A stretch of 63,016 nucleotides of DNA, counting the filler, from Lenisia limosa (taxonomy: Eukaryota > Protista > Breviatea): the NCBI GenBank assembly GCA_001655205.1. It is 17 parts of 17 records of this genome, joined end to end, with 100 filler letters (N's around TTAATTAATTAA, not from the genome) between each part and the next. Parts side by side here need not be neighbours in the genome. Positions count along the whole stretch, not along the records: positions 1 to 2,845 come from LPNZ01002760.1; 16 more parts are not named here. One strand, given 5' to 3'. Numbering within the stretch: position 1 is the stretch's first letter; the number at the start of each line of letters is the position of its first letter. Of this stretch, positions 1 through 651 are shown one piece after another. The notes under the pieces were generated by a model that worked only from the letters and a program-made list of their open reading frames with translations, searched no databases and was not told the origin of the DNA. The position numbers and the translations under genes were made by a program.

Positions 1-87
1 TGGAGAGGGGAGGGGAGTAAAACGAAGGAAATTTCGATGAAGAATATTGGCGCAAAGGTACTAATCACAGTTTGATTGATTCTTCAG

Positions 88-144
88 GATGTGCTGAGTC
101 ACTTCGGCGCACCACAGAATAAGGAAGAGCCCAAGAAAGACTAG
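88..144 (+). CDS. Terminal exon of an upstream gene (DVLSHFGAPQNKEEPKKD*)
   Basis: Acceptor ttcttcag at 80-87 followed by 18 codons and TAG; other frames are closed. Positions 1-87 look like the preceding intron with a G-rich 5' end. Confidence 0.5.
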   Translation, partial: DVLSHFGAPQNKEEPKKD

Positions 145-651
145 AGCCGTGTTTGTTTCTTTATGCATCTTGTTTCCCCTGATACAGCTGTTGAAATAAA
201 TGGTAATCAACATCTGCAAAACACAAGCTTTGCCAACGCGACATTGAAAAATAGTGTGTGGAAATGAGATAGAAATGATTCCACAAACATTATTAGTAGG
301 TTTATTATAATATTGCTCAGCTCACATAGTGTAGCAAATATCATATGGTTACAACTCTGTGTACAGCTTTCTGCGTGGCTCCTTAATGACAAAAGTGTTT
401 CCACACATTATTAGTAGCCATACCTCTCAATCGGTGCAAATTCAGCATCCACTCTACCGGGTGTTTCTGTGCAATCGGTTTGTCATAGTATATAGACTAT
501 CAGAAAACAAAAAATAGTACATATATTATACTGTTATATGATACTGTATGATATATGATATAGCATGATACATAAGTGTGGTAGACAGTTTGTGTTTTCT
601 AATGTCACCCAATTAATGTGATGAACGATTTGTTTTATTTCCACACATTAT

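Follow-up and report, generated by a model that had tools for sequence, protein, structure and literature searches.

Can a single end of a repeated element supply a 3' splice site in one orientation and a 5' splice site in the other? The question is raised by positions 1 to 87 of a 63,016-nucleotide stretch of DNA from Lenisia limosa (assembly GCA_001655205.1; the whole stretch is called the window here). A preliminary description of this DNA had placed an antisense copy of a repeat, cassette B, at 1-55 in a plus-strand gene, and had proposed that cassettes A and B give acceptors when they lie sense to the host gene and donors when they lie antisense, the C-run end being then read as GT-GGGG. 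The locus and the copies of both families in the 49 Mb, 11,727-contig assembly were analyzed. The RNA evidence at the locus is one unstranded Logan contig from a small polyA "metatranscriptomic" library; a DNA-like run of the same study was also used, and both were used as contigs.

An antisense cassette B copy beside a plus-strand exon

Position 1 of the window is the first base of contig C2760. The features read from this position onward are the following.

1 to 17, minus strand: irregular A-G(n) run, cut by the contig edge; in reverse complement it is the B copy's C(n)T tail (in sense, ...TTTTAC TCCCCTCCCCTCTCCA), and most family copies end in such tails.
12 to 68, minus strand: body of cassette B, comprising the last ~52-57 nt at the family's 3' end.
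59 to 65, plus strand: TACTAAT, a branch-point-like motif ~23 nt 5' of the acceptor AG, read from the sequence and of presumed function.
69 to 80, plus strand: 12-nt filler that separates the repeated 7-mer from the truncated end of the element and matches neither the cassette B family nor the RNA.
81 to 87, plus strand: TCTTCAG, a polypyrimidine intron end with the acceptor AG at 86-87; a putative copy of a target-site duplication, identical to the 7 nt that precede GATGTG in the RNA.
88 to 144, plus strand: last coding exon piece, ...DVLSHFGAPQNKEEPKKD, with the stop TAG at 142-144 (RNA contig and hand translation).
145 to 190, plus strand: 3' untranslated region, from the coverage by the RNA contig.

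The antisense copy is real, and it is longer than first described. The reverse complement of 7-52 is identical to cassette B through ...cgttttactcccc, and the homology to the family spans ~7 to 68, reaching 68 and not 55, with 92-98% identity at more than 40 scored places (1,355 candidates). The copy is truncated on its 5' side at reference position 295 (sense GTGATTAGTACC...). On the plus strand, a pyrimidine-rich tract ending in AG occupies 71-87, and the part of the intron 3' of the element, on the side of 81-87, amounts to only 19 nt. Folding of 1-87 as RNA gave no structure above that of shuffled sequences (z = 0.26), and an Rfam search returned 0 matches.

The RNA contig supports a plus-strand terminal exon that starts at 88 or just before, with its acceptor at 86-87, in agreement with the plus-strand host gene proposed earlier. 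The contig covers 81 to ~190, with a depth of 68.9 in the bin 96-190 and of 0 in the bin 191-285, and AAATAAA is found at 194-200 on the plus strand. It departs from contig C2760 at 81 (loose end ...GATGACCAAAC, then 81 onward), joins ...CCAAAC-TCTTCAG to GATGTG at 88, and runs at least 255 nt 5' of 81 as ...CCTCCCCGGCGTGGATTCCGATGACCAAAC, a sequence foreign to the window. The plus-strand frame is open across the 30 upstream nt of the RNA and 88-141. Since the RNA carries TCTTCAG before GATGTG, either the acceptor is non-canonical, ...GAT/T at 80/81, or the upstream exon ends in the last 7 nt of the intron. The latter arrangement, with TCTTCAG at the end of both, has the look of a target-site duplication. 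At the filler's inner end, AGTTTGA (69-75) resembles the reverse complement of the upstream exon end CCAAACT at 6 of 7 positions, which could reflect microhomology, a small inversion at the insertion joint, or chance.

The copy would have a different meaning in a gene on the minus strand, where it would be an ordinary sense copy: the missing base would be C on the plus strand, the acceptor would read ...CTCTCCAG, and the exon would lie off the contig. About 75% of the family ends are followed by G, ends in ...CTCCAG are common, and a minus-strand open frame across 81-166 resembles a signal peptide. Read on the minus strand, however, the RNA junction at 81 has no GT, and positions 69-80, which would be obligatory in a minus-strand exon ending at GTGATTAG, are missing from the RNA. 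These two observations argue for the plus-strand gene, and the minus-strand arrangement is very improbable.

It is also conceivable, though unlikely, that the source of the RNA contig is an allele or paralogue free of the insertion, with an uninterrupted CCAAACTCTTCAGGATGTG, the copy being then a recent exon insertion that is perhaps never spliced. The spliced form and the empty site would be identical in sequence, other B copies look unspliced in RNA contigs (records 9 and 10), and the upstream exon is missing from the assembly, where neither a 30-mer (≤2 mismatches) nor 17/18-mers (≤1 mismatch) found a match. A 20-mer of this exon met a single unrelated chance match among the metagenome contigs (L116), and none of the other contigs that share the unique flank overlaps the left edge of C2760. 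Against such an origin, no joint, skip joint or loose end at 81 was found among the DNA contigs listed, where an empty allele is not evident; the DNA depth of ~36 in the unique region is the same as that of its neighbours, and the plus-strand splice signals are canonical.

Contig C2760 (~40% GC) also holds other features. A gene on the minus strand at 811-1539 is supported by an RNA contig in the pieces 1475-1539, 1280-1374 and 811-1009, with an intron at 1375-1474 that reads CT..AC on the plus strand; 30 RNA letters between the pieces ending at 1280 and 1009 are unaligned. This RNA contig departs from the genome at 1280, at a minus-strand GTAGGGAGGAGGGG, an RNA-supported G-rich GT leader. A minus-strand intron contains, at 1137-1235, an element of 99 nt whose terminal inverted repeats are 25 nt long (TAGGGTTTCACTTCGGTTCGAAAAA and its inverse). 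The summed depth of this element in the contigs of the DNA run is ~183,000, compared with ~36 for the unique flanks, copies are present in many of the fetched loci, and it has the appearance of a miniature inverted-repeat transposon of very high abundance. At 1682-1798, beside an N gap at 1824-1912, a unit of 26-29 nt (CACTCCCCACAACGAACCTTCTGCTG) is repeated in tandem about four times, and a diverged RNA contig skips 1662-1791. Two AT-rich stretches, at 520-570 and 2376-2560, are built of ATATCATAT-like units in direct and inverted orientation; they are probably located in intergenic or intronic DNA.

Copy number and structure of the cassette families

Cassette B is a repeat far beyond chance. 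Its 36-nt core gave 619 matches with ≤3 mismatches (294 forward and 325 reverse), where the reversed-pattern control gave 0, and its 14-nt core gave 935 matches versus 15 in the control. Cassette A (TTTTCCAATTTTAC followed by a C-run) was matched 1,616 times genome-wide, with a control near zero.

The structure of cassette B was established from 122 copies at 110 loci, oriented by the conserved end ...TTCCTTCGTTTTAC and the C-rich run that follows it. The 3' end is common to all 122 copies, and the sense-strand terminus consists of TTTTAC, an irregular C(n)T run and then A. The 5' breakpoints, scored in 119 copies, are spread almost continuously over positions 1-316 of a reference copy 346 nt long; a few copies are as long as ~520 nt. 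At many 5' junctions the copy directly adjoins another cassette's C-run tail, so that head-to-tail chains are formed. Non-LTR retroposons and SINEs are marked by a simple-repeat tail, by a 3' end that stays constant and by truncation of the 5' side at variable points. Cassette B shows all of these traits, its tail being C(n)T; the family thus appears to be retroposon-like and has presumably spread by reverse transcription. The traits of introners derived from inverted-repeat DNA transposons were not found: the one long copy tested (L005, ~520 nt) has no terminal inverted repeats, the 5' ends are variable, and flanking direct repeats at 87 copies show no consistent duplication and no excess over shuffled pairs. 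Clear flanking repeats were seen at two B loci, of 13 nt at L014 and of 9 nt at L048, where they span the intron-exon junction. Together with the 7-nt repeat at 81-87, known through one RNA contig, these are possible signs, at single loci, that an insertion created the intron.

In other respects the cassettes behave as introners do. Many near-identical copies are located in introns of unrelated genes, two of which could be identified with Pfam as encoding a dynein heavy chain (L007) and a WD40 protein (L117), and the 3' end of the element coincides with a splice site, the exact 3' boundary being verified in L007. The 5' ends of cassette B do not coincide with splice sites, because they are truncated at variable points.

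Contig ends or N gaps fall inside cassette C/G runs in 12 of the 122 copies, among them L012, L046, L051, L071, L107, L112, L115, L100 and the copy at position 1. The assembly thus breaks systematically at cassette tails, so that many intron-exon junctions are missing from it, and the tail of the copy studied here may extend to the left of position 1.

Splice sites at cassette ends across the genome

The ends of both families were sorted by the bases that follow the C-run, in three samples.

Cassette B, fetched loci, 110 ends read: run plus AG or near-AG, 79; run plus AC without AG, 3; chain or internal, 10; other or unreadable, 18.
Cassette A, first 100 listed, 100 ends read by eye: run plus AG or near-AG, ~68; run plus AC, 3-4; chain or internal, 8; other, ~21 (AA 7, AT 5).
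Cassette B, first 100 listed, read by eye and partly overlapping the fetched loci: run plus AG or near-AG, ~58; run plus AC, 3; chain or internal, 9; other, 21, plus 9 unresolved.

Among the 79 AG ends of the fetched B loci, 59 have AG directly after the run and 20 have it after a further 1-3 nt (mostly ACAG or GCAG). Two of the three run-plus-AC ends lie in chains and the third in a TG microsatellite; further B candidates with AC after the C-run are present on contigs C5582, C6020 and C6179. The base after the run is usually A, followed overwhelmingly by G, with the remainder divided about evenly among A, T and C. The acceptor state is therefore hugely enriched, whereas the donor-compatible state is not enriched relative to the other non-G states. 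Overall, AG or near-AG follows the C-run at ~58-72% of the cassette ends and AC at ~3%. When terminal AG and AC are tabulated in this way, AC is no more frequent than AA or AT in either family.

The terminus thus works mainly as a ready-made 3' splice signal, and the proposal that sense copies give acceptors is well supported by the AG or near-AG ends in all three samples and by a verified example, L007. A 219-nt intron, running from GTATGGGGG... through a B copy to ...CTCTCCCAG, splits the P-loop of the dynein at this locus, and the exons joined by its removal match adjacent positions of the AAA_6 profile, 20-41 (weak, E 0.18) and 43-69 (35.3 bits, above the cutoff).

The converse proposal, that antisense copies give donors, holds for cassette A, where two such donors are verified or plausible. 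In L117, a 50-residue WD40 exon (PF00400, 32 bits; PF24105, E 3e-10) ends in ...CAAG; GT comes immediately after it, then a G-run, then an A cassette in antisense. In L065, a 44-codon exon with the end ...TCTCC precedes GT, twelve G's and an A copy that is again antisense; an open frame resumes beyond ...CCCTTAG, and the same-strand intron that comes next has an A copy in sense at its end. Such cases are rare, with the donor state found in ~3% of the copies, which corresponds to a penalty of about 20:1. A penalty of this size fits an element that carries the complex 3' signals only in the sense direction. Cassette B was said to behave like cassette A, which is correct for its acceptor ends, but no B copy was verified as a donor, except possibly the one at 1-68. 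Both states of a single terminus exist, as had been suggested, but with a strong bias towards AG. Dual polarity does occur, but seldom and very unevenly; the element is of a known kind, and this is a minor by-product of it.

Two other candidates for antisense donors were rejected: L045 proved to be a sense acceptor of a terminal exon, and the real donor of L124 lies ~110 nt upstream. Pfam searches with the exons of L065, L119, L122 and L045 returned 0 matches. An open frame 5' of GT was dropped as evidence for an exon, given that 37 or more open codons precede the GT at 46% of random GT sites.

The strand asymmetry of GTGGGG and CCCCAG around sense copies is only ~1.5-fold and not decisive. 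In the sampled loci, GT followed after 0-2 nt by GGGG occurs 340 times in 193 kb, both strands counted, and donor-like sites in which GT precedes a G-rich run mostly have no recognisable cassette after the run. Since such sites are common, reading GT-GGGG is by itself weak evidence for a cassette-made donor. The interruptions in donor G-runs were compared with those in cassette tails, in small numbers. Many introns consist of GT with an A-G(n) run, a truncated cassette and a C(n)T run with AG, and little else (L062, L061, L016 and L067). The complement of the C(n)T tails resembles the A-G(1-8) telomere repeats of Dictyostelium.

A broader idea is that one C(n)T-tailed retroposon terminus seeds both splice sites, giving branch site, pyrimidine tract and AG when a G follows and, when reversed and preceded by G, GT with an A-G(n) leader of the kind found at many donor-like sites of the sampled loci; introns of the form GT-G-run ... 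C-run-AG would then be largely footprints of tails. We consider this extension rather unlikely. If it were true, a large share of the introns would have been born from one retroposon lineage that inserts either way round.

Origin of the intron and comparison with known introners

For positions 1-68 we lean towards one 5'-truncated antisense copy of cassette B, an abundant, retroposon-like introner family, lying in a short plus-strand intron. The introner-like insertion would be removed with a donor at the end of its tail and an acceptor taken from a target-site duplicate. According to this reading, the copy inserted antisense into the region of the last coding exon and is now spliced out. The 7-mer TCTTCAG would be the target-site duplication, the intron comprising the inserted fragment and one duplicate, which would supply the acceptor AG in the canonical context TTCTTCAG/G at 86-87. 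Given GT-AG splicing with an AG derived from the duplicate, the donor must directly follow the upstream duplicate. It would lie where the antisense tail ends on its outer side, at position 1 or a few bases past it, and the expected left junction reads ...CCAAACTCTTCAG, directly followed by GT and by the A-G(n) tail into position 1.

The RNA junction with its 7-nt repeat makes such a donor plausible. Family precedent speaks against it: the base after ...CTCTCCA is G in ~75% of the copies, so that, by this precedent alone, the plus strand would read CT and not GT. Duplication as a general model is disfavoured by the 87 copies whose flanking repeats do not exceed shuffled pairs, and L065 has no such repeat at all. 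Where a copy lies in sense, as is usual, and a G comes after this terminus, the terminus would provide branch site, pyrimidine tract and AG, which would account for most copies. The antisense, donor-forming state would be an occasional survivor and not a designed second function.

The main competitor is a passenger: an antisense B fragment inside a longer and older plus-strand intron whose donor lies further upstream, with a coincidental 7-nt identity and with no splice site made by the cassette. Other antisense copies are indeed located 20-110 nt 3' of ordinary donors (L036, with GTAAGT, L043, L124 and L132), flanking repeats are not a general feature of B copies, and the G-run may extend past the contig edge. 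A chance match of 7 nt is, however, improbable, very roughly 1 in several hundred even when the CAG consensus is allowed for, and the intron continues for a mere 19 nt beyond the element on its 3' side. A passenger is thus possible but doubtful.

If the tail-end donor is real, an asymmetric retroposon-like introner would have made a spliceable intron in its unfavourable orientation, with GT from the element and AG from the duplicate. The genome would then give a measured orientation penalty of ~20:1 and a mechanistic case for how transposons turn into introns, and its thousands of young copies would be a system for direct tests of splice-site recruitment. If this donor is not real, the locus holds just an ordinary passenger repeat in an intron.

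Several parts of this picture are known from other organisms. In Aureococcus anophagefferens and in classes 6, 8 and 10 of Polarella glacialis, introners create introns either way round (bioRxiv 10.1101/2020.10.14.339549). The cassettes share with them a high copy number in introns of unrelated genes and the use of both orientations with one favoured, and would also share the provision of one splice site by the element and of the other by a target-site duplication. In our reading, the end of an Aureococcus-type element supplies the same kind of site in either orientation, whereas here a single asymmetric terminus would give AG in sense and GT in antisense, with a bias of ~20:1 or more. The introners of Aureococcus and Symbiodinium are described as resembling inverted-repeat DNA transposons with duplications of fixed length, unlike cassette B with its variable 5' ends, its C(n)T tail and its lack of inverted repeats.

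Symbiodinium introners carry the 3' site and Chrysochromulina introners the 5' site, the other site being co-opted from the duplication (PMC9860276). Sense cassette copies correspond to the Symbiodinium mode, and the intron proposed at 1-87, with a 5' site at the element end and AG from the 7-nt duplicate, would correspond to that of Chrysochromulina. Each of those families has one fixed mode, whereas here both modes would share one terminus on opposite strands; the evidence for the duplication here also comes, indirectly, from a single locus. Introners derived from non-LTR retrotransposons make up ~5% of the classified families, e.g., in Amoebophrya A120 (PMC12130899). Cassette B shares with these the truncation on the 5' side, the 3' end that stays constant, a tail of simple repeats and the arrangement in head-to-tail chains, and differs in having C(n)T, not poly(A), as its tail.

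In primates, exonisation of Alu relies on a retroposon tail that acts as a polypyrimidine tract when read on the opposite strand. There too, a homopolymer-like tail supplies a splice signal and orientation decides which one, but Alu makes alternative exons within existing introns, whereas the cassette tail is found at the ends of constitutive introns and on a genome scale. Introners that act in either orientation, families that carry one splice site and introners derived from non-LTR elements are therefore already known. What appears to set the Lenisia cassettes apart is the combination of 5' truncation and a C(n)T tail with no inverted repeats, together with the idea that one terminus may yield AG or GT depending on the strand and on one flanking G.
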